Part shown: piece after piece, positions 4,515 to 52,217 of the stretch | Position numbering within the stretch: the stretch's first letter is position 1 | Layout: the number at the start of each line of letters is the position of its first letter | NCBI GenBank assembly: GCA_964035545.1 | Contig: OZ037765.1 | Span: 26,907,504 to 26,971,503, forward strand | Reading direction: 5' to 3' | DNA from: Bugula neritina | Lineage: Eukaryota > Animalia > Bryozoa | DNA length: 64,000 nucleotides | The notes under the pieces: generated by a model | Seen by the model: the letters and a program-made list of their open reading frames with translations, nothing else | Told to the model about the DNA's origin: nothing | Databases searched by the model: none | Translations under genes and position numbers: made by a program

Positions 4515-5080
4515 AGTATAAGTATTATTGAATTAGTATTACTCTATTAGTAATCATTACAAGTATTACTATAAGTATAACTATAATCTGAAAATCCAAC
4601 AGTTGCACTATAAGTATAAGTATGACTGTATGAGTAAAACTATAATTATAACATTAAGTTTAACAATAACTTTAATTTATTTATATTAGATTAGTTTAAT
4701 TTGTAAAACTAAACAGTAATACCAAAAGTAAAAGTAAATACTATTGCATTTACTAATACTAATACTATAGTAATACTAATAGTAATAATAAATTATTACT
4801 CATCACTGATCACTGTTGCAGATCATTACTAATACTGTAATAGTAATACTAATAGTAATACCAATGGGCATGGCAATAGTATTACTATTACTAATGTCTA
4901 ATAATAATACTATATACTAATACTATTACTGATTGATAGTAATACTTATACTAAGTCTAATAGTAATACTAATAGTAATACTATTTGTATTACACTAATA
5001 CTAATAGTAATACCAACTCTAAGAGCAAGTACTCATACTCATACTATTACTATTAGTATTAGTAATCATAATCATAATGA
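4515..5080. repeat. Hexamer-periodic low-complexity tract (ACTAAT/AGTAAT)n in NIPBL intron 1
   Basis: Runs such as agtaatactaatagtaat are visible throughout. Confidence 0.85.
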
Positions 5081-5578
5081 TCTGTAACAATTTAAGGACA
5101 TGGGTTTTAGTACTAGTTGTATAACATGTCTTATCATCTTTTATCTCAAGCTGATTTTCAGTCAAACATTGCTGTTCATTTTCACTTGAAGTTGAGGGTA
5201 AAATATGAGTAATTTCAATTTATCAATGTGTTGATTATATACTAAATTTTGTAAATATAATTCTAAACAAGGTTATAACAATTGTACTTGTAGGTAATTC
5301 ATAGGATTAATTGATAGAATCAAATAATTCCTCCTAAGATGAGCACTTCATCAGCATTATTTTCAAGATTTAAGATTAAATTTATAAATTTTAGTTGAAA
5401 TTTATTAAATGATGCAAGCATGTTGAAGGTTTTAAAATTCATTTTTATGACCATAGTATCTAGTTGAAGTTGAGATATGTGGTTTGCTTTATTACTGTAA
5501 TTATATGCCCAGTATATTTCAAGTCATTTTTTTGCAGATGCTGATTGTCTTAATCAAGTGTTCGCTCTAGACCTCAAA

Positions 5579-25747: not shown

Positions 25748-28700
25748 TTAAATAAATTTTGCAGGATCAAAGGGAGACAAATCAATAGTTGAGTTTCCAT
25801 GAACAATGAGCTCCGCAAGACTTTTGCCAGTAGCAGGGGCGTTGAGGATGCCCCGGCTAGAATGTCCAGCAGCAATATACAGCTTCCCATGGTGGTTGGG
25901 TATCAGGCCAATAGCAGGCACATTGCTTTCTGGAAGAGGAAGGTAACAAGCGTGTCCTGTTTCTAGTTTACTACCTACAATGAGAGAGCACAACTTTACA
26001 TAACGAGATGCTGGTGAATCAGCAAACATATTATGTTTGCTGGTTCACTATATTTAGTATATCATGGCTAAAACTTGGTATTGTAATTTTTTGGTGGTCA
26101 GATTTAGTCTTCTATCTATTATTTGTAATGACGCACATTACCATAATGTGTTGATGTGCATCATTACAAATAATAAATAGAAGACCAAAGTCTGATAGCA
26201 AGAATTACAACGCCAAATTTTAGCAATGACTAACTACAAATGGTAAATCAGACGAAAATACTATTTATTGTGGCCAGTACATTAATAAACAGTTTAAAAA
26301 ATTAACAAGAAAACTTGTTCTTGCATGAAATGCAAATCATAATATTCATGAATCAAACTGTTCCATGACAAGTATATCAACAGAAAAGGCTGTGTATTAA
26401 GGGTAGCTTATATAAGATTGCGTTTAAGCAATAGTAACATATTCTTCTAAATCATCCAAACTAAATCTGCTACCACCACATATCTCCACGGTGACTACCT
26501 TCCAATGTTGAGCTGATGTTAGCTCCAACTTTATGAAGAAAATTCAATGACTCTGAACTGGGTTCAACGAGACCGGCATGTTCAGGCAATGGTTCATAAT
26601 CCGTACGACCACAGATATACACAGTGCCATCAGGTCTTGGATAAACTTCAGGGTTATCATTCCCTACATAGCCATTTAATTATTTATTTTTCATCCTATA
26701 TAACTGTGCAAAACAAATTTTCAGCATGATTAAAAGTAGTAATTTAGTTATGCTAAATGTTAATTTTTGTTATTTATGCTTTTAGTCTTGGAAAAAAAGA
26801 ACTGGCAAAGCATTTTACCAAATTTCCAAAACTCATTTTATGAAAATTGCCTATTGGCAATTTTTGAAGCATAAATAACCTTATTCCGTATGTTTGTGTT
26901 AGTTTTCACATGTCATTCACAAAAATTGATATCTAGTATAAACAATTGGACAATGTATGCTGCTTACCATCTTTACTTCTGTAGTTGACAAAGAGAGCGT
27001 GAGCGGATACAGGTTCACTAGGGGTTATGACAATATGGTGCGCCCTGCACGCCCCAATAGTAGGCAGCTTATGACCGAACCATTGGTTGGCTACATTAGT
27101 CCACGGACCCATAGCTAGAACCAGCTTATCACAAGGTAATGTTCCTTTATTCTAAATATCAACAGACAACAATATATTTAATCAATAGATGGCTGAGTTT
27201 ACACATCTCTTGTCATCTAACTTTTAATATCATTAGAGAGTTATGGATTTAATGAGCATATCTAACATAGGGATATGTAGTAAAATAAATGTTATGATAG
27301 AGAAAGGTCTTGTGCAGGGTTATACAGTACGTAAATAAGACCTATTCTGGGTGTGGAATATATTTTTAAGGTATACAAAGCTGATTAGAATCATATGGTT
27401 TTCTAATGATACAAAAAAGTTCTGAAGGCAAAAAACCTTTAAAATGACATAAATACTTATACTTGATAAAATTAATGCTGAATCAAAAATTGAGTATCTC
27501 GAGAGAAACATTTTCTTAAGAACTAACTGTGTGTCTGGTGTTACAAAATTATTGCCAACACAAGTGATATAAATAGAATAAGTCAACATATTAAAGCTCG
27601 GACCTTTCATAAAACACGAGTAGTTAGCCATGTGGGGATAATTCCAACAGTTTAATCAAAACTTCTAGTTTCATCTGAGCAAATACCTGAAGGTTGACAG
27701 CTTTGATAAAGGTCTTGTCTTCATTAGAAAACTCCACACCAACAACTTGGTCTATTATCACTTCACATCCTTTCTTCTGCGCTGCTTCAATAAAGCATTT
27801 AGATAACTTTTTCGGGTGAACCTAGAAAACGCATTTCACAAAGATGTGCATGCCATGTAGAGATGGAAACACTCTTATTGGCTACAAGCAGCAGACAGGA
27901 AGTGATGTACCTGAGCAGTGTTTGTCAAGTCACCAAGAACATCCGTGTGACCAATAGCTGACCCATCCACCCAATCTGGAACACTTGGTGAGCTCTTTGT
28001 TTTTTTGCTGTCTTCCTTTACCATTACCTGAAAAATTTCCAAATTATCATCTAGCTTGTGGCATTACTAATTTTTATTGCACTCAACTGCATTTATTCCT
28101 TCTAAAAACTATTTGATATAATTATTTGACAAAAATAATGCCAAACAATAAATTGTTACAACTTTCCAATTTTTCTCTGGAAAAGCAATACCTCAAGTGT
28201 ATCAACTGCTCTATAATCGCTGTCAAACATGGCCCCATATTTTTTATGCAGATCAAAACTCTCTCTACTAAGAGGTCCAGTGGGGCTATGATCAGACCAG
28301 TTTCTGAAAATTATGTCACCGTACGTTAGCTATGAGCCCTAATTGAATCAATTAGATTCAAAATGATGGTACATTTTATTATTATGTGCTACCTGCGAAA
28401 TTTTCATATAATAATACATCTTATAATACTTATGTGAATATGGCTAAGCAATTGAACAGATTTTTCATATTTTTAAAACATAATGGTAAAAAATTTTGTT
28501 AGAAACTCCTCTAATTTTATACAATAGACCCTTTTCAAATGTCCCTCTAGGGGCTTTTATAATTTGAAGTTGTCTCCTCCCACCCGGTATATGGGGGAGT
28601 CTATATGATATATAGAAAGTCATAAAATCAGGAGAAATTTAAGGTTTGTGTGAGGACTATTGCTAGCATGAGTTTTTTTTTTCTGAGATAAATATTTTGG

Positions 28701-31700
28701 CCTAAGCATACATAATAGCAGTTCCAGAAAATTTTTAAAAATTTTCTTTCTTGACAAATCTTGAGAAAAATAAACTTCAAAGCATGTTTGTGGTTTTGGT
28801 TACTGAGCTAGTTGAAATGGTAACTATGATACAAGTCTCATTAATTATTTGTTATACTGGCTGTCATGTTCAATTCATAGCTGTTGACCTTTCAACTTTT
28901 TGGTCAGAATCTGCTGTTAGCACAGTCTTAGAGCTCTGCTAGTGAATGAGACAGCAGATTAGCTGTTAGCATTTTCAATTAATTATATACTTATGCACTT
29001 ATGTTATAAAAATAGCTAAACTACCTACCTCAATACCCATCATTTTCAAGAAGCATTCTCACAAAACTATAGATAAACGATATATTATTAAATAGACTGG
29101 TTAAATTTGTATCATCAAACGAATATGAAATGTGGATTAATACATGTCGTTTAATTTTCTAGCAGGTTAAATGCATCTATTGCACTTGCAACAATTGTGC
29201 TCAAATAAATATATCTAGATAAACCCCCGATAGCCTTTTAGCTGTTGGCATTCAGGTTTTTGTGTTACAGTTTTGTTATTTCTTAATATTATGCCTGTGG
29301 CTTGTAGTATAGGAACAGTAGTGAAGAAATTGAGATAGCCTAAGTTTTTTGAATTTCTTTATAAATTTTGGTGTTGCACATAACATAACTTCTTTTGCTA
29401 CATTTCTAATCTAGAACAAAGGCTTTTCTCAATTTCTCCATTACTGCACCTACCCGTGTGTAGTAGTCATCTCTGTCAGCTGCAGTAGACTCAAGGTCCT
29501 AGTTAATGTAGGTGGTAGGTTAAAACATAGTTATATAATGAAATAGGTAAAAGGCCAACCTAAGCCAGCCATTACTGAACCTGAAAACCCAAGTTTTTTA
29601 ACTCATCAAATTGCAACATAGGTAAACTGAATTATCTGAAAACCGCTTCTGAAAGAATTTCTGGTTGAAAAGTATGAAGCAAATTCTGATAAAGGAAGCA
29701 GTGAAAGTATGTTGAAAATATTGAGTTATTAACTTTTTGCTTGGGTTTTCAGTGAAACCATTTAATGTTATAGCTTCTCAACTTCTCATGCTCTAAATAT
29801 CTACATCAGCTAGTCTTATTGAAACTTAGCTGTAGTTTTACAGCTGGCTTGGCTGATCCTGGGTCACAAAATGTTATGCATAATCGAGGATAAGTTCACC
29901 CCAAGTATAACATATCGATCAATTAGAACTTTCAAATAAAACTATTAGACCTGTTGTAAAACATGCAATAAAGATATAGGGCAGACAAAATATTTCAAGA
30001 TGATATTGAATTAAAAGATGTCTGCCTCTTGTAAATACTTTAAATGAGCTTCTATTTTAAATATTCCTACAGAGTTTTGACTTTTTTTTCATTCATTTTT
30101 GTTCATGCCTACTTATATTATAGCCAGTATTTACACTGAATTTCGCAACATGTTGTCCGGTTTTTGTAAACTGCGTAAACGGAAAAGCGGAAATTTCTGC
30201 AAAAACGGCGGAAAAGTACTTAACCGAGCAATTTTTTTAGTAATCGCTGCGTAATACTTTTGTGTATGCACGAAGCATAGGTTTTAGTTGAAAAATGACA
30301 CAACTCTATTATTAAAATAATCTTGCATTAAGAAAACCTCGGCAACGTGTTAAGTACTTAGTCTATTTCATCCCTCACAACCAACGTGATATCTTCAACT
30401 CTACAAGTACACCCCTTCAACTGAACAGCTTTATATCTTTTTGCTTGAACCTAAAATTTTCACTTCGACTTTCCAATATAACAAATAAAGCTAGAGATGG
30501 GTAAGCTCAATCTGCTTATAAATTATTAATAACATTTTTAAACTAAATAATTGTCGATTAAAATAATAATCTAAATCATATTAACGATTAAATTTAATAA
30601 ATAATGATATTCATATTAATATTAATAGAAATATTAATAATACTAATAGTAATACTAATAGTAATACTAATAGTAATAGTAATACTCAATAGTAATAGTA
30701 ATGCTGTAATACTAATAGTAATAGTATCACTTTTACTAATACTAATACTAATAGTAATACTAATAGCGTTTAATTAATAATATAAATAATAATTATAAAT
30801 TAATATACTTATACTTATAGTGATAATTATATATTAACTTATACTTATAGATTACGATATCATTTTAACTTTAGGTATTGAATTACATTTATTATAATTA
30901 TAATTGTATTACTAATATTAATATTAATACTAATAGTAATAGTAAATGTAATACTATTAGTATAACTATTAAACTTAGTGCTACTAGTTCTATTACTATT
31001 GTCTATTAGTATTACTATTACTATTAAACTTAGTATAACTCTCCATCAGATACTGAACTATGTCGATAAACATAAGGCTGTTCACGCAGCAGTCCTAGAT
31101 TTTACAAAAGCATTTGACCGGGTCCCCCATGCCCTTCTAATGGAGAAACTACGAACAATTGCACCAATGGAAGACTATCTGCTCGGATGGGTACACAACT
31201 TCCTCCTAAACCGATCTCAGAGGGTCGTACTCGATGGCAAAAAGTCAGAACCACTGCCAGTGACATCTGGGGTACCTCAGGGCTCTGTGCTCGGCCCCAT
31301 ACTGTTTCTCGTGTTCATAAATGATCTCCCTGACTGTGTTGATTGTGAAGTTGGTCTCTTTGCAGATGACACCCTCCTCTACCAGCCTGTCTCAGATGAC
31401 CAAGACAGACTAAGGTTTCAAAGGAACATAGATGCAGCAGGAAGTTGGGCTTCAAAGTGGGGTATGGAGTTCAATGTTAAAAAGAGCAAAATTATGGCAT
31501 TCAAAGAGCAAGATATACCAGCACACTACACGTTAAATGGCACAGTTCTAGAACAGGTGGACAAATCAACATACCTCGGAGTGACTCTACAGGCCAACCT
31601 GAAGTTTGATAATCATATTCAGAGCAAAATATTGCTAGCAAACAAACAACTGGGGATGATCAAAAGGGCTTTGCACTGGGCACCCGAAAAAGTGAGACTC

Positions 31701-34700
31701 ATGGCTTACAAATCCCTATGCCTTCCTCACCTAGACTATGCTTCTGCTGTTTGGGACCCCTATACTACAAAAGAAATAAATTCCATCAAAGAGGTACAAA
31801 CACGGGCAGTAAGAGCCATAGCTAACATCAAGGGTAGAAGAGGAGTGCGAGAAGCAAAAGAAAGACTGGAGCTGGCCGCCCTCGATGAAAGAAGAAGAAC
31901 TCAACGGCTAAGACTCCTTATGAGGATACTCCAAAAGGAAGAATATCACCCAGCACTCTCTACAGCGTATGAAGAACTAATAAACACCCCGGAAAGTTTT
32001 ATCCAAACTAGGGCCCAAACACTAGGACAGCCAAGATCAGTCAGCACCAATAATAACTGCTATTATAACAGCTTCTTGCCACGAACAATCCGTGACCTTA
32101 AAGGGAACAATCCTTGCAAGACTAATTTACACACAGAATAATCTAAACATTGACAGGTTAACTTACCTGTACTAATAAACAATATTGCAACACACACTGC
32201 AACCAATTTATGGACTATTGTATGCATTTTACTTTCTGACCAACCATAAACATATGAGGCATGCCGCTTCTGCTACCTAGTGGTCTAGCATGATCGTAAT
32301 CTGGAGGTAACTGGAGGTATAACTATAAGTATTAGTATTATGTTAATTAATAATATTTTAGTATTAAATTAATTATTAATATTAATAATAATAATATAAT
32401 CATAATGATAATCATTGTCATTATATAAAGTGTAGTACTATTATTATTATTTTAATATAATTTTGTATTATTAATAATAATAATTCATAATTGTATTGGT
32501 ATTCTTATTCTAATACTGTAGTAGTAATTCACATCTGCTTATCTTATGTTTATTTTAATTCATTTAATTATATATGTAATTCACTAACCAGTAATTGTTA
32601 ATTGGTATTGTGATATTAATATAAGTTTATAACTATACTTATGGTATATTGATTAATAATTAGTAAGTCTAAGACAAGATGGATAGTAATACTTATACTA
32701 CTTGAGTGTTTTATTCAAATCGTTGAGAAAAAGTGCACCAAACTTTCACATTGATGCAGTTGAACTTAAACATATATGTGTTTAATGAATTGGCTATAAC
32801 ACTCAGTCACATGTTATCTTAAAACCCATTTTATACCCTGTTAAGACTCATTTTGGTCTTGTGGTGCAGATATAGTGTATTTGACATTTGTCTTGTGAGA
32901 GTAACAGTCTTTCATATTAAATAAGCCAAGAAGTCTAGGTTTTTTTAAGCCAGATTGTTGTTCTGATTATATAATTTGAAGTCAAGAATATTCATTGTTT
33001 AGCATTCATTGTAATGGTCCTGTTGTTTTGATAACTTTTACAGATTATAGAGGTATAATTAATTTTGGAAATACATGCTTTTTAAATGCATGTATTCAAA
33101 CTATAAGCCGCACACCACCGCTACAAGTAAATTGTGAGTACATAAATTTTAATTTATCTTTTTCTTAGGGGATTAATATGACTTTAAACCTAGATTTAAA
33201 GTAACTTGTTATATTTATATAGGAAATAAATGGTCATGTTTTTTCATACTGTAATCGAGAAGTAGATCACTGTTTTGGTCTTTTGGTCTCACTTTAGTGT
33301 TTTTTTTTTGTTATATATGCTTCATTTGTTACTGTGCCAGTAGCAATTCCACAGATCAAGGGTTGAATTTCATGGCTAACGATAAATTTCAAATCCCTTA
33401 TCAAAAACCAAATGTATAATTGACATTTTAATCAAGAATAGCCACCAATTAAGGCTTCTTTTACATACATATTTTGTTTTTAGAGGTTTTACCTGATTTC
33501 ATGAATAATGAGCAGCATGATGTTGCAGAGGTATTAATGGAAGTTTATAACATGCGATGCAATAGGTTGGGTAACATTAACATTGCTTGAACACATTTGT
33601 TGCTTATGTATAGTTTATAATTTCTAAAGTGACAGTTAGTAGGTACACTAAACACTAATGCTCTTTTCTTCAATGGGACAAAATTGTTCTGGTCAGAAGT
33701 TGAATAGTTGACTAAATGTCATTTCTACAATGCTGAAACAGCATTTGCTCAGTCAATGAATTTATTACCAGTTCCTCTATTAGAGGTGATTTGGCAACAA
33801 ATAGAACATTCATTTTATTGGCACTATAGCATCACGTTTTTGTATTGGCTATTTTATCTGTTACAGAGTGAGGTCACACTGCAGGGCATCAATCCAGTTC
33901 CAAGAAACTAGATGGATATGTTTTCCAAGGGTACTTTGTGCATTTTATGTTTACATAATATTTTGGACCATATTCTTGAGAATTTCTGACTACTGAATAA
34001 ATACTCATGTTACTATTTTCCAGCTCTAGTAGTCTAGATATAACTGTACAACTGTCTCAGTTTACAAAGCCTCCAAAAGTCTTGGCTATCACTTTGAAAA
34101 GATTTGATGAACCAGGAGTCAAGTTAACTAAAAACTTGGAAGTACTGGATTTGCTTTATATAACAGATAAGAGTGGGGCGAGAAGTATTTAACAAATACT
34201 TGTATACAAAGAGGCACAATACAAGAGCAGTTTATTGCTGTTGCAGGAACAAATATTTAATTAGCTCCAAGAATAAATGCAATAGGTATTACGGACATTC
34301 TGGTTCTAATAGCTGTGATAAAGGTACAGCTGTATAATCATCTATATTGTTTATCTTTGGCTGTGTGTTTTGTCATTAGCTTTGCACTTGTGAAGAAAAT
34401 TGTAATTTGTTGATTGTTTGTTTTGACAGCTTTGTTTGTGTTCAAGAAGAGAATCCTTGGAATATTTCCCTGCGCTACTCACTGTTACAAATTCATAGGA
34501 CTTGCTTGCTAGCATGTGCAAGTCCTTTGAAGTTGACTGCTGAGTTGACAGAACAGTAAACCACCAGCTTCGTCACAAGACTCCAATGTAATCAAGTTGC
34601 TTTTTACAAATTGGTTTGGTTTCAATGTAGCTGTTACACCACTGTGGTTACAATTGTCACTTTCAAAGTAAAGAGTGACAGCTGATTGTTCCATTATTAT

Positions 34701-36692
34701 TTACATATTTCCTCCAGATAGTATTGTAGCATCAAAGAAGACCTACTGAAAATATATTGATTTATTTAGCGGTATTTTAACTGTTAGCAAGACTTTGCAA
34801 AATGTATACATTCATATTAGGTGTTTAGGGCATTAAAGCTTTGATAACCGTTGCATATTTGCAATTATATGCAAGGCGTTATAAGCCATGACGAAGTTTC
34901 AGTTGTTCAGCATTTTGGTGACATTTCGTCAGCAAATATGTTTTTGTAATTTTTATTTGCTGTGCCTTGAACACATCTTTATACAAAACTAAAAAAAAAA
35001 TTTTTTTTTTCTCTCACTTTTACTTATATTATTGCATCATATTTTATGTTTTATTGTATAAATATCAAATAGTTCTTCAAGTTATTGTGTTCTTTGATTA
35101 CATCATGCTGTACAGTAATACATACAAGTTACCAGTATGTACAATTTCACTCACATCTTTACAATATTATTTTAAAGAACAAAAATTTAAAACAACTTTG
35201 CTGCCATGGCTATTCATTTACTTCTAGTGAGTTATCGATCAGTTTTGAGCACAAGGCCTAAGTTTGAGGTAGTGAAAGTAAATTATTTATTTGATGAAAT
35301 TATACTAATTGAGTCACACTATTTGAAATAGCATTGTACTATAAATACTAACGATAGTTCTACGTTTTATAGTTGAAGTTTGAAAATACTCATGAGCATG
35401 ATAACAATAATAAGCATTTTTTATTATAACAATTACATGCAACGATAAATATTAATTTATTTTCACTGTAGTTTTTAATGAGATATTTTAATGGGAATTT
35501 CGATAAAAAAAAATATTATGCTGGCTAGATAACTTAAGTCGTACGAATGTTAGCTGAATAACTAAAATTTAGTTAATAGTAAAACATCGAAGGTTTTGGT
35601 ATCTATGCAACTACGAGAATCACAATTATTGGGCTCGGTTTTGTAGTTTATAAGTTAATTATTAGCAGGTAAAAATGTATCTGTCAATACCATAATAAAA
35701 ACTAGTTGTGTAACTAAACTCTTTGTGCGCCGACGGCTTGGATGTTTCCTGATTTTATGGCCACGCTCACGCAACCGGATTTTATGTTTAAAAGTGGTCG
35801 TTAGAGGTTTTTCTGAGTTGTTTTCTCCTGTTTACGTTTACGCCACTTTTTTCCGCCTTTACGTTTACGCAGTTTACAAAAACCGCATGTTGTCATGTCT
35901 GTGATATGCAATAAATCAATCAACTATATAAAATATGTTAAATAAATTTTTGCCTAAACTGAGCTTTGCTTCTCTTAGTAATATTTTTCTTTTAAAAAAG
36001 TTTTGGCTATAACATGAAACTATGTAAAGCATTGACGGTCCTTTGAACATAATGTAGTACAAACTCTTCAAAGTATAATTATGTGTACATGCTAAAACAC
36101 AGCTAAGCAGGCATGTGAGTAATTACATGTAACTAGCAGTGAAACTGGGCCACTGCAGAGTTGAAAGGTCAATTCAGCTATAAATTGCATGGCCATAACA
36201 GACAGGACAACAAATGATAATTGAGACTTAATCATAGTTGCTATTTCTGCATTGCCCAGCAACGGAAACCACAAAAATGCGTTCAAGCATATTTTAGGCA
36301 ACATTTTTGCATGTTGGGAGGACACAACTCTTAATTTTAGCGGGACATTGGAGACCACTGAAAAGGGTCTTTTGAAACTTTTGAAAGAAAATTTTCAATT
36401 AGTTAGCAGAACATAACATATGCAAACAACCTTATTTATATGATCAATGTAGTTGGAGTTCATTGATAATAACTTTGCATATCACTGTAAAAAAGCACTT
36501 GTTTTTCTTAGTCAACAATAACAGCAAGCAATACCTGGCAAGGAAACCACCAGCATGTCCTGATGCTGCACACGCAATAGAAACACGCTCAACCAACGTA
36601 CATGGAATGCCCATTTCTGTGAGATGATAAGCTATAGAACAGCCAATAATACCACCTCCAACAATAACAACTTTCTCTATTTCATTTGCCAT
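25748..36692 (-). CDS. FAD-dependent oxidoreductase, DAO family, TDA3-like (7 exons)
   Basis: Exons 36692-36535 (VVIVGGGIIG..ACAASGHAGGFLA), 28303-28192 (NWSD..LSRESFDLH), 28027-27911, 27821-27687 (VHPKKL), 27151-26968 (VLAMGPWT), 26663-26499 (PEVYPRPDGTVYICG) and 25974-25748 (ACYLP..AGHSSRGILNAPATG). Phases are consistent. Confidence 0.88.
30497..34322 (+). pseudogene. Decayed multi-exon ubiquitin-specific protease (peptidase C19) gene inside the TIR element
   Basis: ATGG|GTAAG at 30497-30500 splices in frame to exon 33044-33133, giving MDYRGIINFGNTCFLNACIQTI (Cys box). About 33486-33565 reads NEQHDVAEVL (QxD box). About 33680-33785 reads LFWSEVE*LTKCHF..LLPVPL. 33867-33930 is frameshifted. 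34024-34190 reads PPKVLAITLKRF. About 34250-34322 is a His-box-like YLISS..HSGS. Stop and frameshift present. Confidence 0.8.
31041..32316 (+). mobile_element. 5'-truncated non-LTR retrotransposon (CR1/L2-group LINE) with intact RT C-terminal ORF (31041-32141)
   Basis: RT motifs LDFTKAFDRVPH, SGVPQGSVLGP, FADD and YLGV. The 3' tail is a tandem (A)CTGGAGGTA repeat. TSD GTATAACT at 31033-31040 and 32317-32324. Confidence 0.93.
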
Positions 36693-37163
36693 GACTGGTA
36701 AATAACAGTTGAATCTAAAATTAAATTTGTTTCTTTTTTAAAATAGTATAAGGTGACAAAAATAAACCTGTAACAGAGAAGAATAAACAAAGCATTTCCT
36801 CAACTCTTTAAGGTAGCAAGTTTCAAATTGTAGTCAGTCTGTTAGAAAAAACATGGAAAATCTGGTTAATGTCAAAGAACTAAATGTGCCCTAGCAGTGC
36901 TACCTGCCTGTCATGGTTGAAAGATTGCAAATTTATATGAATGTGCAAAGGAATGTAGTAAGTAAGCAAATCTTACCAACATATTATATACAATAAAATA
37001 AATGTACTTTTATACAACTTTAAAGCCGACTGGAAATATAACATTACATAATTTCAGAAATAAGATCGCTTGTTGAGATACCTTTTTAGTTTATTAGAAT
37101 GAGAAAATGGAATAAATTAAAACAAATGAGTTTGCATAACACATTGGATAGAATGCTTTTGGC

Positions 37164-37882
37164 TTATAACACTAAACAATCAAACAATTCTATTGTTTGT
37201 GTAACTTTACAGTTTAATGATGACTCAAAAGAAAAAATCCATTTCTTTAAAGCGTGATGAAGTTCTGTAGAAAGTAAACATTGAGGTACACTAAAGGAAC
37301 ATACACAAAATTTATTACCACAAAACATAGTTTCACATCTAGTGATTAATAACGGAGTATGGCTTAAACAATTTGTTTCTGTTGTTACAAAATAGACTGT
37401 AGGAAATCCTAACAACAGCCCAATAACAGTAGGGCCAGAAATAAAGACAGCACTGTGAAGCTCATACACATCATTTAGCATATCTGAGTGAAGGTTTTGC
37501 CAAGATTGCAATAGACCAACAAGTTCATCAATATAACTTGAACAATCTATAAACTGTGGGCTACTTAGTCCCACATCAATAAACCTAACCCTTGACTGTT
37601 GCAGATGTGTTAAAAGTGTTGAAATTTTTGCAAATATGATGTCCTGTGAGAATTCAATAATAAAAATATCTTTTAAAGCAGCCACACTTTTTGATAAATC
37701 TTGTCCTATTTTCAATGACAATGATGGTGAAATGCAGCTATGGTCATAGAGGAAAGCTGGACGAGCTTTAGTTACAAGGCACATGAAGTTTGAAGTAAGA
37801 TTTAGTAAAATTCTAGTTCTCCCACCCATCCCAGTTTTTAAGTGGCATAAATACATCTTTCTGTGGTAGACATGTAATCCAT
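37164..37882 (-). pseudogene. C1orf74: C1orf74/UPF0739 homologue, copy A, frameshifted
   Basis: Same acceptor and ATG (37882) as copy B, but the 13 nt AGATAACACTTCA (+ strand) is missing at about 37847, shifting the frame after codon 11. The ORF-track call starts at an intronic GTG. Confidence 0.72.
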
Positions 37883-38379
37883 AATCTAAAATAGGCAGAT
37901 GGGTGTTAATAAGATATTCATATTGCCTCACTATTTCATTATAATCATTATCAAAACTTCACTAAACTTGCTTCAAGTGTCAGTAGTCGTAGAAAAAGTG
38001 CATCCCTGGCCCTTCCACTCACTCTTAGGTAAATATTATTTGCAGAAGTAGTATAACTATAAGACAATAATTTAAATTTTCATCATGTTTCTGATTGTTT
38101 TTGGAATTACTAATGTCAATGACTGATGTAAAACTAAATGAGTAATTAAATAATTAACATTTGTTCTATTCCTCATTCAGTCATTACTTATAGTTTAAGT
38201 TATTACTATTAGTATTAGTATTACCATAATGATGACAATTATGATTATCAATATTGATATATCATTATGAGTAATCATTATCATCATGATACTCAATTTC
38301 ATATTGATATTGCTAGTTACTGTTAGGATGCCTAAATTGCAGTGGTTAAAAATGTAATACTAACTACCAACTAGTAGCT

Positions 38380-38713
38380 TTGGCGTGCTTTTGCGGATAG
38401 ACGAACGATGCAAACTTGAGCAGTTAGAACAGTGCACTTTATTAATACTATCATAGTTGATGTTATTATCAGTTTTACATATAATTATGACGAGTCGAGC
38501 GCGGCAAAGGCCACGTGCTTCATCAACATAAACTTACCTTGCGCCTCGCGAGTCGCCAACACTATCACTACGAGTATCAGACATTACCTCTTGGACGGTT
38601 TTTTAATTGTGGATTCTGTTCAATCGCTGAGTCATCAACTCATTGTGCTGTAAAAGCATTGGGCTTTTTGTTGTTTTGCTTCAAATTATAAACTCTGAGT
38701 TGTTAATTTAATG
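38380..38713. promoter_or_regulatory. Bidirectional promoter with head-to-head non-coding first exons (copy A)
   Basis: CpG-rich patch (CACGTG, CTCGCGAG). Minus-strand donor AAG|GTAAGT at 38538 and plus-strand donor ATG|GTGAGT at 38713. Flanked on both sides by periodic tracts (about 38180-38330 and 38765-38900). Confidence 0.7.
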
Positions 38714-39392
38714 GTGAGTCACATTCAAATTGAAATGTTATTGTTTATACATTTAGATTTACAATCACTGAATCAGTATCACTATGACTATGAGTATCAC
38801 TATCAGTATGACTGTCAGTATCACTATGAGTATGACTATCACTATCAATATGAGTATGAGACTGACTGTACCACTATTAGTGTATGAGTAACTTAGTATG
38901 GGTATCACAATCTGAATGAACATCAATATGTTGGCACAATGTATATTAAAATAAAAATTGATATTTTATTTAAACTTCTACTGGCAACTTTTTCTGTTAT
39001 ATACTTAAATAATACAGTTTAACTGCAAGTTTTGTTTTATAAAAAGGAATGCTTATGCTCGTGCTGGTATCATCTTTTGAAAATTGCATGTTGGTATTGG
39101 TAGTGGTAGGTCAATTGTCTTGTGTTCCATTTGATTTTTGCATAAGTCTAAAGCAATAACCAGATTAGTCATTAATTAATTAATTAAAGAGTTAGTAGCA
39201 TGCAAAAGGCAGTTAAATATTCTCAGTGTTTGTGAAATTTCCTAATCATCTAATGGCAATGCCTTGTAAATATACAAACACATATGGAGTGATAATTAAT
39301 CACAACCAAAAGGCATGTGAAACTGAAAGTACAATTGATAACAATATAGTATTTTGATATTTACTACTTTATTGGCTACTGTAAAATAATTT

Positions 39393-39463
39393 TGCCCCAC
39401 TGGGAAACGGACCCGAGACCTCCGGCTTGCAAGCAAGTGTGCTAACCATTACACCACCAGACC
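39393..39463 (-). mobile_element. tRNA-derived SINE head or tRNA pseudogene
   Basis: The minus strand reads TGGTGTAATGGTTAGCAC (A box) ... GGTCCGTTTCC (B-box-like). Acceptor and anticodon stems do not pair. Confidence 0.7.
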
Positions 39464-39701
39464 ACTGGGTAAACTCAACACTACAGCTACAACTTCTAGA
39501 TTATTTGAAGAATAAATTCTAAAAATAGCTTTTTATCCGGGCAACATTTTCTGATTCTTCTATGTAATTTCAGAATGTATAAAAGTTTTAAGTTTTTACA
39601 TATTTCACAATAGATAACAAAACAATAAAAATTACAATATTGTGCAATGATATTAGGCATTTTCAAAGCTCTGTAAGTGAATAACTTTGATTTGTAGGAT
39701 T

Positions 39702-41190
39702 ATGCCTCGTCAGAAAAAGTTGAAAGATCCAAGTCTTGACCGTCCTCAATTACAAAACAAAAAGCGAAACAAAAAGCGAAACAAAAAGCGTAAAATTGAG
39801 CAAAATATTGCTGACATCGAATCAGTGTCCAACCAAAAGAAAATGAAACTCAGTGCTGTATTGAAAGCTCCGGTGGCTAAAGGCACTATGTTTGTCGGTG
39901 CTCATATCTCAGCTGCTGGTACAGAATTTAATTCATTGCTGGTAGCTCAAGATTTTAGCATCAAGTCTAGTGAAATATATAATTTCAAGCCTTTTCAAAT
40001 CAGATATATTGCTTAATAGAATTCACTGTAAAACTGGGTTTAAACCTTAATGAGTTGGCATTGGTAATTATTTATGTCTAAGTCATCACTGGTAATATCT
40101 TTGTGCAGATTTTGTAAATATATTATACGAGTAGAAAATTTTACTTCTATAAATTATCTTGCGTTACTTTTGAGCAACTTTGAAAATCTGCTTGCCTATT
40201 TTCACCAGGTGGAGTTCATAATGCGGTGACCAACGCTGTGAATATTGGGTGTAAATCTTTTGCACTGTTTTTAAAATCTCAGAGGCAGTGGAATGCCAAA
40301 CCATTGGACCCAGTCGTCATTGAAAAGTTTAAGACTCTTCTTAAAGTGAGTTATGTTATTTGTTAAATCATTGCATACTCAGCTATCTCACTATTTTTTA
40401 GTAATTAAAAAACAGTTTGATTAGTTTATCTGTTTTAGGCTGTTTGAATTTTTGTAGGAAAACAATTTTGAGCCACATTTAATAGTGCCTCATGGCTCGT
40501 ATCTCATCAACTGCGGCTCCCCTAGCCCAGAGACTTTAACCAAAAGCAGAGAAGCACTAGTTGCAGAGCTGCAGCGATGTGAGCAGCTGGGACTCGCTAG
40601 ATACAACTTCCACGCTGGCTCCACGTGTGGCAAGCAGTCTATTGAGCAGAGTATACAGCAGATAGCTAGCTGCATTAATGAAGCTCATTCTAAGACAAAG
40701 TTCGTCACTGCAGGTTTGCCTTTTTTTATAAATCCAGCCTTTTAAATGACACTCTGTCCTTCTATGTTATAACAGCATATAATAAGTAATTTTGGAGTTT
40801 TCTTCACAGTTTTTCATTAGATGAAATTTGATAAAACAAAGAATTAGCTATTTAATGCTAGTGCCCAAATATCTAGTAGTAGTATGAAGAAAGGTTTAGA
40901 TGTAGAAGAATATATAATAACACATCATATACTGGACAATTTTTGTGAGTGTTTATTAGCTTCTTATAATCTGGAATTGTTGGCAAAACATGAAGAAAGT
41001 CTGAGTTTTGCAAACTAATGCCCCAGTAACATCTGCGTAGTCAAATTGTTTATTTCAGTCATAGAAATTATGAGTTGTCAAGGCAACACAATTGGAGGTG
41101 AATTTGAAGAGTTGGCAGCCATTATAGATCTGGTTAAGAATAAGTCCAGGATTGGTGTGTGTCTGGACACTTGCCATGCTTTTGCTGCTG
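39702..41190 (+). pseudogene. Endonuclease IV (APN1/Nfo family), copy A, 3'-truncated by the duplication junction
   Basis: Exons 39702-39918, 40209-40345, 40458-40713 and 41059-41190 ([29 protein letters not shown]). The last two exons are missing. FHPG is changed to FHAG and IENM to IEIM relative to copy B. Confidence 0.85.
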
Positions 41191-41592
41191 GTGAGACAAT
41201 AAGTTGTAATTATAACATTGGTTAAAAATAGGTATTTTATTTTAGAATAATTAATATAATTTTATTGCCTGCAATTCCAAGCAAAGATACTATTTGGGCA
41301 AGATTTTTTATACATACTTGTGTGTTAGAGTGTAGCTGTAATTTGAGGGTGATTTTAATAAATTACTTCAGGCTGTAAACAAAGCTATGATTTGTTCTTC
41401 AGAGTTATCTCCTCAGCTTGTGTACACTATTGCTAGTTTAAAGCTAAACACATAAAGCACGAATTTAACCCAACAGTAAACCTTGGCCTAACTGCATTTA
41501 TTTCTCCCTGTAAAATGCACCAATGCGGGTCCAGTACTGTCCAAACTAGTGGGTTTCAGTCAGGTGATCACCGAATTATTTATTGGTCAGAT

Positions 41593-45496: not shown

Positions 45497-45922
45497 GTAA
45501 ACAAAAATAACTCCAGGCTGTTTATTTAGGTAGAGAAAGGTCTTGTGCAGGGTTATACAGTACGTAAATAAGACCTATTCTGGGTACTGTGGAATACATT
45601 TTTAAGGTATACAAAACTGATTAGAATCATATGATTTTCTAATGATACAAAAAAGGTCTGAAGGCAAAAAACCTTCAAAATGACATAAATACTTATACTT
45701 GATAAAATTAAGGCTGAATCAAAAATTGAGCATCTCAAAAGAAACATTTTCTTAAGAACTAACTGTGTGTCTGGTGTTACAAAATTATTGCCAACACAAG
45801 TTATATAAATAGAATAAGTCAACATATTAAAGCTCGGACCTTTCATAAAACACGAGTAGTTAGCCATGTGGGGATAATTCCAACAGTTTAATCAAAACTT
45901 CTAGTTTCATCTGAGCAAATAC

Positions 45923-48900
45923 CTGAAGGTTGACAGCTTTGATAAAGGTCTTGTCTTCATTAGAAAACTCCACACCAACAACTTGGTCTATTATCACTTC
46001 ACATCCTTTTTTCTGCGCTGCTTCAATAAAGCATTTAGATAACTTTTTCGGGTGAACCTAGAAAACGCATTTCACAAAGATGTGCATGCCATGTAGAGAT
46101 GGAAACACTCTTATTGGCTACAAGCAGCAGACAGAAAGTGATGTACCTGAGCAGTGTTTGTCAAGTCACCAAGAACATCCGTGTGACCAATAGCTGACCC
46201 ATCCACCCAATCAGGAACACTTGGTGAGCTCTCTGTTTTTTTGCTGTCTTCCTTTACCATTACCTGCAAAATTTCCAAATTATCATCTAGCTTGTGGCAT
46301 TACTAATTTTTATTGCACTCAACTGCATTTATTCCTTCTAAAAACTATTTGATATAATTATTTGACAAAAATAATGCCAAACAATAAATTGTTACAACTT
46401 TCCAATTTTTCTCTGGAAAAGCAATACCTCAAGTGTATCAACTGCTCTATAATCGCTGTCAAACATGGCTCCATATTTTTTATGCAGATCAAAACTCTCT
46501 CTACTAAGAGGTCCAGTGGGGCTATGATCAGACCAGTTTCTGAAAATTATGTCACCGTACGTTAGCTATGAGCCCTAATTGAATCAATTAGATTCAAAAT
46601 GATGGTACATTTTATTATTATGTGCTACCTGCGAAATTTTCATATAATAATACATCTTATAATACTTATGTGAATATGGCTAAGCAATTGAACAGATTTT
46701 TCATATTTTTAAAACATAATGGTAAAAAATTTTGTTAGAAACTTCTCTAATTTTATACAATAGACCCTTTTCAAATGTCCCTCTAGGGGCTTTTATAATT
46801 TGAAGTTGTCTCCTCCCACCCGGTATATGGGGGAGTCTATATGATATATAGAAAGTCATAAAATCAGGAGAAATTTAAGGTTTGTGTGAGGACTATTGCT
46901 AGCATGAGTTTTTTTTTTCTGAGATAAATATTTTGGCCTAAGCATACATAATAGCAGTTCCAGAAAATTTTTAAAAATTTTCTTTCTTGACAAATCTTGA
47001 GAAAAATAAACTTCAAAGCATGTTTGTGGTTTTGGTTACTGAGCTAGTTAAAATGGTAACTATGATACAAGTCTCATTAATTATTTGTTATACTGGCTGT
47101 CATGTTCAATTCATAGCTGTTGACCTTTCAACTTTTTGGTCAGAATCTGCTGTTAGCACAGTCTTAGAGCTCTGCTAGTGAATGAGACAGCAGATTAGCT
47201 GTTAGCATTTTCAATTAATTATATACTTATGCACTTATGTTATAAAAATAGCTAAACTACCTACCTCAATACCCATCATTTTCAAGAAGCATTCTCACAA
47301 AACTATAGATAAACGATATATTATTAAATAGACTGGTTAAATTTGTATCATCAAACGAATATGAAATGTGGATTAATACATGTCGTTTAATTTTCTAGCA
47401 GGTTAAATGCATCTATTGCACTTGCAACAATTGTGCTCAAATAAATATATCTAGATAAACCCCCGATAGCCTTTTAGCTGTTGGCATTCAGGTTTTTGTG
47501 TTACAGTTTTGTTATTTCTTAATATTATGCCTGTGGCTTGTAGTATAGGAACAGTAGTGAAGAAATTGAGATAGCCTAAGTTTTTTGAATTTCTTTATAA
47601 ATTTTGGTGTTGCACATAACATAACTTCTTTTGCTACATTTCTAATCTAGAACAAAGGCTTTTCTCAATTTCTCCATTACTGCACCTACCCGTGTGTAGT
47701 AGTCATCTCTGTCAGCTGCAGTAGACTCAAGGTCCTAGTTAATGTAGGTGGTAGGTTAAAACATAGTTATATAATGAAATAGGTAAAAGGCCAACCTAAG
47801 CCAGCCATTACTGAAAACCCAAGTTTCTCAACTCATCAAATTGCAACATAGGTAAACTGAATTATCTGAAAACCGCTTCTGAAAGAATTTCTGGTTGAAA
47901 AGTATGAAGCAAATTCTGATAAAGGAAGCAGTGAAAGTATGTTGAAAATATTGAGTTATTAACTTTTTGCTTGGGTTTTCAGTGAAACCATTTAATGTTA
48001 TAGCTTCTCAACTTCTCATGCTCTAAATATCTACATCAGCTAGTCTTATTGAAACTTAGCTGTAGTTTTACAGCTGGCTTGGCTGATTCTGGGTCACAAA
48101 ATGTTATGCATAATCGAGGATAAGTTCACCCCAAGTATAACATATCGATCAATTAGAACTTTCAAATAAAACTATTAGACCTGTAAAACATGCAATAAAG
48201 ATATAGGGCAGACAAAATATTTCAAGATGATATTGAATTAAAAGATGTCTGCCTCTTGTAAATACTTTAAATGAGCTTCTATTTTAAATATTCCTACAGA
48301 GTTTTGACTTTTTTTTCATTCATTTTTGTTCATGCCTACTTATATTATAGCCAGTATTTACACTGAATTTCGCAACATGTTGTCATGTCTGTGATATGCA
48401 ATAAATCAATCAACTATATAAAATATGTTAAATAAATTTTTGCCTAAACTGAGCTTTGCTTTTCTTAGTAATATTTTTCTTTTAAAAAAGTTTTGGCTAT
48501 AACATGAAACTATGTAAAGCATTGACGGTCCTTTGAACATAATGTAGTACAAACTCTTCAAAGTATAATTATGTGTACATGCTATAACATAGCTAAGCAG
48601 GCATGTGAGTAATTATATGTAACTAGCAGTGAAACTGGACCACTGCAGAGTTGAAAGGTCAATTCAGCTATAAATTGCATGGCCATAACAGACAGGACAA
48701 CAAATGATAATTGAGACTTAATTATAGTTGCTATTTCTGCATTGCCCAGCAACGGAAACCACAAAAATGCGGTTCAAGCATATTTTAGGCAACATTTTTG
48801 CATGTTGGGAGGACACAACTCTTAATTTTAGCGGGACATTGGAGACCACTGAAAAGGGTCTTTTGAAACTTTTGAAAGAAAATTTTCAATTAGTTAGCAG

Positions 48901-49183
48901 AACACAACATATGCAGACAACCTTATTTATATGATCAATGTAGTTGGAGTTCATTGATAATAACTTTGCATATCACTGTAAAAAAGCACTTGTTTTTCTT
49001 AGTCAACAATAACAGCAAGCAATACCTGGCAAGGAAACCACCAGCATGTCCTGATGCTGCACACGCAATAGAAACACGCTCAACCAACGTACATGAAATG
49101 CCCATTTCTGTGAGATGATAAGCTATAGAACAGCCAATAATACCACCTCCAACAATAACACCTTTCTCTATTTCATTTGCCAT
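45923..49183 (-). pseudogene. TDA3-like oxidoreductase copy B, exons 1-4 only
   Basis: Exons 5-7 were removed by the deletion at 45531. V>G substitution in the first Rossmann strand (EKGVIVGGG). Confidence 0.85.
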
Positions 49184-49654
49184 GACTGGTAAATAACAGT
49201 TGAATCTAAAATTAAATTTGTTTCTTTTTTAAAATAGTATAAGGTGACAAAAATAAACCTGTAACAGAGAAGAATAAACAAAGCATTTCCTCAACTCTTT
49301 AAAGTAGCAAGTTTCAAATTGTAGTCAGTCTGTTAGAAAAAATATGGAAAATCTGGTTAATGTCAAAGAACTAAATGTGCCCTAGCAGTGCTACCTGCCT
49401 GTCATGGTTGAAAGATTGCAAATTTATATGAATGTGCAAAGGAATGTAGTAAGTAAGCAAATCTTACCAACATATTATATACAATAAAATAAATGTACTT
49501 TTATACAACTTTAAAGCCGACTGGAAATATAACATTACATAATTTCAGAAATAAGATCGCTTGTTGAGATACCTTTTTAGTTTATTAGAATGAGAAAATG
49601 GAATAAATTAAAACAAATGAGTTTGCATAACACATTGGATAGAATGCTTTTGGC

Positions 49655-50386
49655 TTATAACACTAAACAATCAAACAATTCTATTGTTTGTGTAACTTTA
49701 CAGTTTAATGATGACTCAAAAGAAAAAATCCATTTCTTTAAAGCGTGATGAAGTTCTGTAGAAAGTAAACATTGAGGTACACTAAAGGAACATGCACAAA
49801 ATTTATTACCACAAAACATAGTTTCACATCTAGTGATTAATAACGGAGTATGGCTTAAACAATTTGTTTCTGTTGTTACAAAATAGACTATAGGAAATCC
49901 TAACAACAGCCCAATGACAGTAGGACCAGAAATAAAGACAGCACTGTGAAGCTCATACACATCATTTAGCATATCTGAGTGACGGTTTTGCCAAGATTGC
50001 AATAGACCAACAAGTTCATCAACATAACTTGAACAATCTATAAACTGTGGGCTACTTAGTCCCACATCAATAAACCTAACCCTTGAGTGTTGCAGATGTG
50101 TTAAAAGTGTTGACATTTTTGCAAATATGATGTCCTGCGAGTATTCAATAATAAAAATATCTTTTAAAGCAGCCACACTTTTTGATAAATTTTGTCCTAT
50201 TTTCAATGACAATGATGGTGAAATGCAGCTATGGTCATAGAGGAAAGCTGGACGAGCTTTAGTTACAAGGCACATGAAGTTTGAAGTAAGATTTAGTAAA
50301 ATTCTAGTTCTCCCACCCATCCCAGTTTTTAAGTGGCAAGATAACACTTCATAAATACATCTTTCTGTGGTAGACATGTAATCCAT
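49655..50386 (-). CDS. C1orf74: UPF0739 protein C1orf74 homologue (DUF4504), intact copy, single coding exon
   Basis: 243-aa ORF with RPAFLYD, FIDV, TVIGLLLGFPIVY, NCLSHTPL and SFSVP motifs recognisable from human C1orf74. Acceptor TTTTAG lies 3 nt before the ATG. Confidence 0.85.
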   Translation of the reverse strand: MDYMSTTERCIYEVLSCHLKTGMGGRTRILLNLTSNFMCLVTKARPAFLYDHSCISPSLSLKIGQNLSKSVAALKDIFIIEYSQDIIFAKMSTLLTHLQHSRVRFIDVGLSSPQFIDCSSYVDELVGLLQSWQNRHSDMLNDVYELHSAVFISGPTVIGLLLGFPIVYFVTTETNCLSHTPLLITRCETMFCGNKFCACSFSVPQCLLSTELHHALKKWIFSFESSLNCKVTQTIELFDCLVL

Positions 50387-50894
50387 GATCTAAAATAGGC
50401 AGATGGGTGTTAATAAGATATTCATATTGCCTCACTATTTCATTATAATTATTATCAAAACTTCACTAAACTTGCTTCAAGTGTCAGTAGTCGTAGAAAA
50501 AGTGCATCCCTGGCCCTTCCACTCACTCTTAGGTAAATATTATTTGCAGAAGTAGTATAACTATAAGACAATAATTTAAATTTTCATTATGTTTCTGATT
50601 GTTTTTGGAATTACTAATGTCAATGACTGATGTAAAACTAAATGAGTAATTAAATAATTAACATTTGTTCTATTCCTCATTCAGTCATTACTTATACTAT
50701 AAGTTATAGTTTAAGTTATTACTATTAGTATTAGTATTAGTATTACCATAATGATGACAATTATGATTATCAATATTGATATATCATTATGAGTAATCAT
50801 TATCATCATGATATTCAATTTCATATTGATATTGCTAGTTAGGATGCCTAAATTGCAGTGGTTAAAAATGTAATACTAACTACCAACTAGTAGC

Positions 50895-51229
50895 TTTGGC
50901 GTGCTTTTGCGGATAGACGAACGATGCAAACTTGAGCAGTTAGAACAGTGCACTTTATTAATATTATTATAGTTGATGTTATTATCAGTTTTACATATAA
51001 TTATGACGAATCGAGCGCGGCAAAGGCCACGTGCTTCATCAACATAAACTCACCTTGCGCCTCGCGAGTCGCCAACACTATCACTACGAGTATCAGACAT
51101 TACCTCTTGGACGGTTTTTTAATTGTGGATTCTGTTCAATCGCTGAGTCATCAACTCATTGTGCTGTAAAAGCATTGGGCTTTTTGTTGTTTTGCTTCAA
51201 ATTATAAACTCTGAGTTGTTAATTTAATG
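50895..51229. promoter_or_regulatory. Bidirectional promoter, copy B
   Basis: Duplicate of 38380-38713. The minus-strand donor here is GTGAGT. Confidence 0.68.
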
Positions 51230-51907
51230 GTGAGTCACATTCAAATTGAAATGTTATTGTTTATACATTTAGATTTACAATCACTGAATCAGTATCACTA
51301 TGACTATGAGTATCACTATCAGTATGACTGTCAGTATCACTATGAGTATGACTATCACTATCAATATGAGTATGAGACTGACTGTACCACTATTAGTGTA
51401 TGAGTAACTTAGTATGGGTATCACAATCTGAATGAACATCAATATGTTGGCACAATGTATATTAAAATAAAAATTGATATTTTATTTAAACTTCTACTGG
51501 CAACTTTTTCTGTTATATACTTAAATAATACAGTTTAACTGCAAGTTTTGTTTTATAAAAAGGAATGCTTATGCTCGTGCTGGTATCATCTTTTGAAAAT
51601 TGCATGTTGGTATTGGTAGTGGTAGGTCAATTGCCTTGTGTTCCATTTAGTTTTGCATAAGTCTAAAGCAATAACCAGATTAGTCACTAATTAATTAATT
51701 GAAGAGTTAGTAGCATGCAAAAGGCAGTTAAATGTTCTCAGTGTTTGTGAAATTTCCTAATCATCTAATGGCAATGTCTTGTAAATATACAAACACACAT
51801 GGAGTGATAATTAATCACAACCAAAAGGCATGTGAAACTGAAAGTGCAATTGATAACAATATAGTATTTTAATATTTACTACTTTATTGGCTACTGTAAA
51901 ATTATTT

Positions 51908-51979
51908 TGCCCCACTGGGAAACGAACCCGAGACCTCCGGCTTGCAAGCAAGTATGCTAACCATTACACCACGGGGACC
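51908..51979 (-). mobile_element. tRNA-derived SINE head, copy B
   Basis: Duplicate of 39393-39463 with B box GGTTCGTTTCC. Confidence 0.7.
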
Positions 51980-52217
51980 ACTGGGTAAACTCAACACTAC
52001 AGCTACAACTTCTAGATTATTTGAAGAATAACTTCTAAAAATAGCTTTTTATCCAGGCAACATTTTCTGATTCTCTTATGTAATTACAAAATGTATAAAA
52101 GTTTTAACTTGTTACATATTTCACAATATATAACAAAACAATAAAAATTACAATATTGTGCAATGATATTAGGCATTTCCAAAGCTCTGTAAGTGAATAA
52201 CTTTGATTTGTAGGATT

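Follow-up and report, generated by a model that had tools for sequence, protein, structure and literature searches.

How does a gene for a ubiquitin-specific protease (USP) come to lie between the terminal inverted repeats (TIRs) of a DNA transposon, and is it a piece of host sequence picked up in passing or a gene that the element carries in its own right? The question is raised by a stretch of 64,000 nucleotides from the bryozoan Bugula neritina (assembly GCA_964035545.1, contig OZ037765.1, positions 26,907,504 to 26,971,503 of the forward strand; hereafter the window, with position 1 at its first letter). A first-pass annotation, made from the letters of the window, had described in it a recently mobilised TIR transposon with a compact, multi-exon USP gene inside, and had offered two origins for it: descent by deletion from an autonomous family in which a deubiquitinase serves as an accessory, or formation as an animal counterpart of the Pack-MULEs, i.e. 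Mutator-like elements (MULEs) carrying captured host sequence. As set out below, the segment 30158-35885 is very probably a non-autonomous, internally deleted Mutator-like element, the autonomous relatives of which encode an accessory USP along with the transposase.

Boundaries, target site and recent movement of the element

The element is delimited by perfect inverted repeats of 24 bp (CGGTTTTTGTAAACTGCGTAAACG), which can be stretched to 36 nt with a 94% match, and by a perfect 9-bp target-site duplication (TSD; CATGTTGTC), both at the positions given in the first-pass annotation (Table 1). In an alignment of the window to itself 27298-30157 pairs with 45531-48384 (98.8% identity) and 35886-41511 with 48376-54025 (96.8%), and on the paralogous segment these two blocks overlap by the 9 bp of the TSD, no more and no less. 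This exact overlap, on which CATGTTGTC is found a single time, identifies 48376-48384 as the empty site that had been proposed in the neighboring duplicate. As the paralogue is empty, the element must have inserted after the local segmental duplication. The duplication itself extends over more than 12 kb of the window at 95-99% identity, with parts that are collinear but interrupted; in addition to the two pairs above it includes 17553-21713/41593-45531.

The search for further copies that the first-pass annotation had suggested shows the element to be one of a family. The TIR 24-mer, with up to two mismatches, occurs 39 times in the 216-Mb assembly and its reversed control not once, and a whole-genome DNA search taken together with a TIR pattern search recovered at least 17 TIR-bounded elements. 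Ten of these (L002-L011), which we term canonical, are 4.48-4.52 kb long and have perfect TIRs, each with a 9-bp TSD of its own, nine of these TSDs being perfect and that of L010 having one mismatch. Five further copies with perfect TSDs comprise four longer ones and a 1.18-kb miniature derivative, which brings to 15 (14 perfect, L010 with one mismatch) the copies other than that of the window that are flanked by 9-bp TSDs. Two groups among the canonical copies show 0-0.1% divergence inside a group and 1.3% between the groups, and such near-identity of copies indicates that the family transposed very recently. The window copy, which is 2.2-2.6% diverged from all others, represents a slightly older line.

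Several members of the family have individual features. The miniature derivative (L035, C1:29584507-29585689) consists of the two ends of the element with perfect TIRs and the TSD TAAACCCCA. Two others, L033 (C1:23110315-23119636) and L034 (C1:34256575-34265454), are canonical copies with nested inserts of 4.4-4.8 kb of other sequence near element position 1130-1150. A solo TIR is present at C8:8896837 and a distant transposase relic at C7:8997272.

A long copy with a Mutator-type transposase

A search of the longer copies for a DDE transposase and an intact USP, which had also been suggested, found both in a single element of 9.27 kb (L031; contig C1, 703709-712977). It has the same perfect 24-bp TIRs, the TSD CAATAAGGC and a transposase open reading frame (ORF) of 732 residues at 6502-8700. 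Where they can be aligned L031 and the short copies are 78-88% identical, and two stretches are present in L031 but not in the short copies, namely 3369-6023, with the His-box exon of the USP, and 6544-8484, with the core of the transposase ORF. Alignment of the window copy to L031 leaves two internal gaps, which are the deletions through which the short copies arose from the long form. What the window copy retains of the transposase is its last 77 codons, the DDE core being deleted; judged by the presence of its own transposase it is not an autonomous element. In the DNA run X4 there is also a form of the long element that has lost 3.9 kb (one additional C at the joint 3255>7196); its depth is about that of the full form, and it might be a second deleted copy or an unassembled allele.

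The first-pass annotation had listed Mutator/MULE, Merlin and AcademH as superfamilies with 9-bp TSDs. As TSDs of this length are not exclusive to Mutator, the element could be placed among the other superfamilies whose TSDs measure 8-10 bp (Merlin, AcademH, hAT or Transib-like), a placement toward which its TIRs, short (24-36 bp) beside those of plant MULEs, and the sub-threshold Pfam match of L031 might be taken to point. The L031 ORF aligns with positions 2-99 of the 99 in the MULE profile (PF10551) at an E-value of 7.8e-4 (20.3 bits). Eight relatives of this transposase in public assemblies show 29-41% identity in the alignment (A1), and the MULE domain, the sole transposase family matched, is detected in six of the nine aligned proteins, each time over the whole profile and with a best E-value of 5.1e-6; the transposase of L049, a relative considered below, gives an E-value of 6.6e-4. 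The alignment has the invariant acidic residues D314 (in GIDMTYN), D383 (in G[ST]DR) and E501 (in YNNxNES) and an equally invariant C404xxH407 after the second aspartate; this DDE spacing with a following CxxH is the signature of Mutator transposases. Nine of the ten best neighboring clusters in the ESM Atlas are MULE/SWIM clusters, and a sequence search of the transposase against PDB gave no match. There is neither a helicase nor an IS1016-like domain, and the TIRs and TSD of the element lie within the ranges reported for MULEs (TIRs of 14-500 bp and TSDs of 8-11 bp; PMC6446971). The transposase signature, the MULE matches and the 9-bp TSDs together decide for Mutator rather than Merlin or AcademH, and it would be very surprising if the element belonged to any superfamily other than Mutator.

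The protease gene of the long copy

The USP of L031 is compact, consisting of the catalytic domain only, and is divided into about nine short exons (A-I), of which A-H are each open in their own frame. Read in order they supply the Cys box, the QQD box, the zinc-ribbon pairs CNFC and CEGC, the block KILAITLKRF, the His box SGHY with FDDNK, and an end of the form ..LICYEM. The Pfam UCH profile (PF00443), scored exon by exon, gives 19.8 bits with exon A, 20.5 bits, and 32.8 bits with the His-box exon G, and in a genome-wide UCH scan the His-box region of L031 scores 39.5 bits.

Contigs X1 and X2, which come from presumed RNA-seq libraries of another sample and are 95-99% identical to L031, allow the exon borders to be placed. 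They show GT..AG joints at 2251>2442, 2919>3005, 3324>3698, 3823>3960 and 4016>4948 (L031 coordinates), and these joints are absent from the DNA run X4. The introns 2517-2618 and 3079-3170 were placed from frame arithmetic and strong splice sites, and the intron 2701-2810 from frame arithmetic and a spliced loose end. The USP exons of the long form are both transcribed and spliced. One isoform in X1 (L031 2919-3171) skips the second finger exon, which puts it out of frame and leads to an early stop.

Linkage of the protease and the transposase in distant lineages

When metagenome contigs were scanned with the alignment of the transposases, 21 loci were obtained, and in three loci besides L031, namely L044 (= L048), L047 and L049, a USP lies upstream of the transposase, the transposases of these lineages being only 37-41% identical. 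L044 and L047 have exons with the KRF block and the His box 5' of the transposase and on the same strand, and in L049 the Cys box, KRF block and His box are contiguous and followed by the transposase. L049 and the genomic contig L044 are 76-80% identical at the nucleotide level in blocks, which in L044 are split by gaps of about 750 bp and about 780 bp; as these gaps fall at exon borders, L049 has the appearance of a transcript, already spliced, from a related element.

A comparison of intron positions, which the first-pass annotation had put forward as a check, shows three of them to be shared. Intron F|G lies before EV..YR. Intron G|H follows DD.K, has AAG|gtaact as its common donor, and is absent in L047. 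Intron H|I lies after ..YE[KM] where it can be placed: L031 shows it directly, L047 has a GT donor after ..CFEM, and in L044 it is implied by a break in the tblastn alignment to the L049 USP.

The USP of L049 is an uninterrupted ORF of 269 residues that matches positions 2-253 of the 254 in PF00443 at 71.7 bits. The profile test proposed for the reconstructed peptide thus gives matches with single exons in the window copy and L031 and over the full length in L049. In an alignment with 39 USPs (A2) the L049 protein retains the catalytic Cys, His and Asp and the four zinc ligands; in this alignment C11 is nearly invariant and H216 and D232 are invariant. Its AlphaFold2 model (pLDDT 85.9, pTM 0.84) retrieves USP46 in a Foldseek search with an E-value of 1.8e-21 and a TMq of 0.82, and also USP36, USP35, USP12 and Ubp8, with E-values of about 1e-21 to 1e-19 and TMq up to 0.83. 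Among 1.84 billion representative proteins its identity to full-domain relatives is about 32% at most, and the closer matches are short fragments of the L049 lineage only. Its best match in the Bugula neritina genome is L031, not a host USP.

Other searches with the protease were less informative. A word-based homologue search with the 269-residue USP returned one fragment, multi-exon genes being uncalled on metagenome contigs. An exhaustive USP search ranked mostly multi-domain cellular USPs at the top, because the scores of their tandem domains add up, and none of these has a MULE domain. Exon-level BLAST against the top scorers does not separate transposon from cellular USPs, the exons being too short.

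These data bear on the proposal that the USP is a capture of the Pack-MULE type, that is, a one-off pickup of a host USP fragment carried as cargo without a role. MULEs are known to acquire fragments of host genes (PMC6446971), and a reader of the window copy and of all the short copies would find nothing but a broken, truncated USP. L031, however, has a whole USP with all catalytic motifs beside its transposase; the three other lineages keep the USP in the same place with shared intron positions at the transposase divergence given above; and the genome contains no similar host USP, just as the database relatives with a full domain are remote. The recurrence of the linkage and of the intron positions in distant lineages points to a conserved accessory gene and not to a Pack-MULE capture. 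With the USP found in autonomous-type elements of four lineages and with no close host counterpart, a Pack-MULE origin is scarcely credible, and of the two origins offered by the first-pass annotation it is the deletion derivative of an autonomous, deubiquitinase-bearing family that the long copy, the two deletions and the linkage support. The pattern as a whole fits a long co-inheritance of the USP with the transposase.

A further question is whether the conserved USP is a separate protein, or the N-terminal domain of one spliced USP-linker-transposase fusion. The mRNA-like contig L049 carries both the USP exons and the transposase ORF, the L031 transcript extends beyond the His box to include exons H and I, and there are RNA contigs between USP and transposase, all of which a fusion would account for. 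Against it, in the spliced form of L031 (joint 4016>4948) the reading frame of the USP is closed after 15 codons of exon I, and in L049 likewise 15 codons after ..YEK. The transposase-side frame starts within the last USP codons, with an ATG embedded in the Y-E codons at a +1 offset, and overlaps the USP ORF, an arrangement common to L049 (732-850) and L044 (about 2300), the corresponding site in L031 being 4009-4016 with 4948. Neither lineage has a single continuous ORF, and the stop of the USP frame together with the overlapping +1 frame implies that a plain fusion is not encoded by these sequences. The two frames may still be joined by frameshifting or by an unseen isoform, and we regard a fusion protein as unlikely.

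The window copy in detail

The interior of the window copy can now be read against the long form (Table 1). Six exon-like USP blocks are present on the + strand with their motifs in the order that had been claimed (Cys box, QHDVAE box, finger, PKVLAITLKRF), and the block of the Cys box (32983-33132) matches Pfam UCH at 26.8 bits, above the cut-off of 23.9. The compact catalytic-domain protease reported for the element stands as far as exons A-F are concerned; in this copy it is truncated, without the His box (GHY) and the catalytic Asp, the exons bearing which have been deleted. The decay that had been noted is real, comprising the stop, the frameshift in exon E, and Cys>Phe, Cys>Ser and Cys>Tyr changes, of which Cys>Tyr is private to the window copy. 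The remaining defects are common to the canonical copies that were compared (L002, L006 and L011, one per subgroup), and L032 has the same stop and Cys>Phe without the frameshift. It follows from this sharing of defects that the short subfamily descends from a progenitor with an already inactive USP, and the USP of the window copy, a truncated pseudogene, would have no function.

The description of the content of the element was incomplete in one respect, in that a nested fragment of a long interspersed element (LINE), a non-long-terminal-repeat (non-LTR) retrotransposon, had gone unnoticed beside the USP exons. It accounts for 1,277 bp (1.28 kb) of the element's 5.7 kb, is found in no other copy of the family, and is flanked by its own 7-bp TSD, GTATAAC (31033-31039 and 32317-32323). 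Its 3' tail has CTGGAGGTAA-like repeats. More than 15 further genomic copies of this LINE are 94-99% identical, and the LINE family is thus young as well. Upstream of it, from about 30570, there is an AT-rich tract of TAATAG/TAATAC-type repeats that is present in all copies of the transposon.

Table 1. Features of the element in the window and its uninserted site (positions of the window; L031 positions where stated)
Feature	Position	Strand	Remarks
5' TSD copy, CATGTTGTC	30149..30157	.	once at the empty paralogous site 48376-48384
5' TIR	30158..30181	+	perfect over 24 bp, extending to 30193 (36 nt) at 94%
5' subterminal region	30182..31039	+	aligns to L031 500-1381 at 83%
Nested 5'-truncated non-LTR retrotransposon fragment (C-terminal part of reverse transcriptase and 3' tail)	31040..32316	+	RVT_1, E-value 1.8e-25
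USP exon A remnant, Cys box (NFGNTCFLNACIQ)	32983..33133	+	PF00443; donor placed from the L031 RNA joint
USP exon B remnant	33318..33380	+	
USP exon C remnant, QQD-type box (EQHDVAEV)	33486..33563	+	
USP exon D remnant, first zinc-ribbon pair	33678..33785	+	stop at 33705-33707; Tyr in place of the second Cys of this pair
USP exon E remnant, second zinc-ribbon pair	33867..33922	+	short deletion causing a frameshift; Cys>Phe
USP exon F remnant (PKVLAITLKRF)	34037..34177	+	
Deletion junction 1	34219..34221	+	2.66 kb lost (L031 3369-6023), with His-box exon G and exons H and I
Transposase C-terminal remnant	34699..34928	+	corresponds to L031 ORF residues 656-732 at 59-67% identity; interrupted by two stops
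Deletion junction 2	34716..34717	+	1.94 kb lost (L031 6544-8484), transposase core with the DDE residues
3' TIR	35862..35885	-	24 bp perfect
3' TSD copy	35886..35894	.	
Uninserted site, paralogous segment	48376..48384	.	

A side observation concerns the assembly. Outside the window, full-length UCH-domain matches occur on small contigs (C34, C83, C63, C14, C43, C117 and others), with many in-frame TAA and TAG and few or no TGA codons. Frames rich in TAA/TAG and poor in TGA are the pattern of the ciliate code, and the assembly thus appears to contain some admixed ciliate DNA.

Proposed function of the protease

The following scheme can be proposed for the family. The short copies would depend for their movement on an L031-type transposase supplied in trans, which would bind the shared TIRs and subterminal repeats. 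In the autonomous elements the USP would act as an accessory enzyme that shares a transcription unit with the transposase. It would most likely remove ubiquitin either from the transposase or, at the site of the element, from factors of chromatin or repair, and the outcome would be that the transposition machinery is stabilised or that ubiquitin-dependent host restriction or silencing is countered. A stronger form of the proposal is that this is an undescribed Mutator-like lineage, in this genome and in several uncultured eukaryotes, in which an old, conserved minimal USP is co-transcribed with the transposase and needed for efficient transposition, be it by shielding the transposase from ubiquitin-dependent degradation or by erasing the ubiquitin marks of transposon control. 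We advance this stronger form tentatively, as a serious possibility that falls a little short of probable.

A number of points weigh against the above interpretation of the element and its protease. The assembly has only one intact transposase ORF of this kind, that of L031, the second such ORF, on C6, being riddled with stops; L031 is only 78-88% identical to the short copies it supposedly mobilises; and its MULE score lies under the curated Pfam cut-off of 27.6 bits and is weak when taken alone. On the transcript side, the RNA origin of X1 and X2 is a guess, the contigs being from another sample and at the divergence from L031 given above; L031 1700-2099 has no RNA coverage, and the transposase body is covered by an RNA contig in neither X1 nor X2. 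A first exon of the USP, such as had been claimed for the window copy, or an in-frame ATG was sought in L031 and none could be supported, and the +1 frame of L031 is closed at its third codon by a TGA that straddles the joint of exons H and I. The relative L043, with a transposase 38% identical, has no convincing USP in the 5.8 kb upstream. Moreover, the deubiquitinase activity is a prediction and the role in transposition a proposal.

Two observations concern the individual contigs from outside this genome. L043 is a Logan contig with its transposase at 5811-7934, and the linkage is thus not universal unless the USP of this element lies further upstream. On the 11.3-kb metagenome contig L047 no TIRs were found, and no complete element could be delimited outside this genome.

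Enzymes of the ubiquitin system that are borne by transposons give a clue to the ways in which mobile DNA deals with control by its host. Known cargo of this sort comprises Ulp1, OTU and VTD domains, with roles that are mostly unproven. If the interpretation given here is true, the USPs, which are the largest class of cellular deubiquitinases, would be a fourth transposon-borne class beside these three. The family would also make a tractable system, as it combines an enzyme of about 250 residues, near-identical recent copies, one apparently intact autonomous copy and deletion derivatives that lack the enzyme, and it is thereby suited to a direct test of whether deubiquitination aids cut-and-paste movement or escape from silencing. 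In annotation, there is a risk that the short copies would otherwise be called fragmentary pseudogenes of host USPs.

Comparison with known systems

A search of the full-text literature for a USP-carrying MULE or other DNA transposon returned nothing relevant, and within the scope of that literature we found no description of a USP as an apparent accessory gene of Mutator-like transposons. A survey of MULEs from 2019 reports no protease or ubiquitin-related accessory gene, the words 'ubiquitin' and 'protease' occurring 0 times in its text (PMC6446971). The family studied here resembles the MuDR/MULE superfamily, including the animal groups Phantom, Ghost, Spectre and Rehavkus (PMC6446971), in its MULE-domain DDE transposase with CxxH, in the 9-bp TSD and TIRs, in the abundance of internally deleted non-autonomous derivatives, and in the presence of a second ORF, which some MULEs also have (mudrB and the zinc-finger ORFs). 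It differs from them in that the second gene belongs to the USP/C19 family and in that the TIRs are short (24-36 bp).

Plant MULEs are known to carry Ulp1 (C48), as in the KI-MULE/Kaonashi elements. The Ginger DNA transposons carry OTU and Ulp1 (PMC2836005). The elements described here share with these Ulp1- and OTU-carrying transposons the combination of a cut-and-paste element and an accessory cysteine isopeptidase of papain fold, but the enzyme is a USP/C19 protease (PF00443), of another clan and family; Pfam finds in the cargo UCH and UCH_1 only, and neither Ulp1/C48 nor OTU.

Helitrons and Helentrons also encode deubiquitinases, which consist of OTU and VTD domains inside the RepHel polyprotein and have been proposed to guard transposition proteins from proteasomal degradation (PMC9741609). 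The activity of VTD has been shown biochemically (PMC9741609), whereas that of the USP is predicted from sequence and model. Both systems place a deubiquitinase on a transposon, with the same kind of role suggested for it; the Helitrons are rolling-circle elements with the enzyme in a polyprotein, whereas here it appears as a separate multi-exon gene in a DDE element.

The minimal cores of cellular USPs (USP46/USP12, USP36, USP2 and Ubp8 of SAGA) have the same fold, the same Cys-His-Asp triad and the same four-Cys zinc ribbon. Their identity to the L049 USP is 16-21% in structural comparison (and at most about 32% by the sequence search for full-domain relatives), and the element USP is set apart from them by its size of about 250 residues without accessory domains and by being encoded in a transposon.

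Finally, the window copy shares with Pack-MULEs the appearance of a non-autonomous MULE with gene-like exons and introns inside, but its gene-like content differs from theirs in having been inherited, to judge from the long copy and its distant relatives, from an autonomous parent rather than captured from the host.

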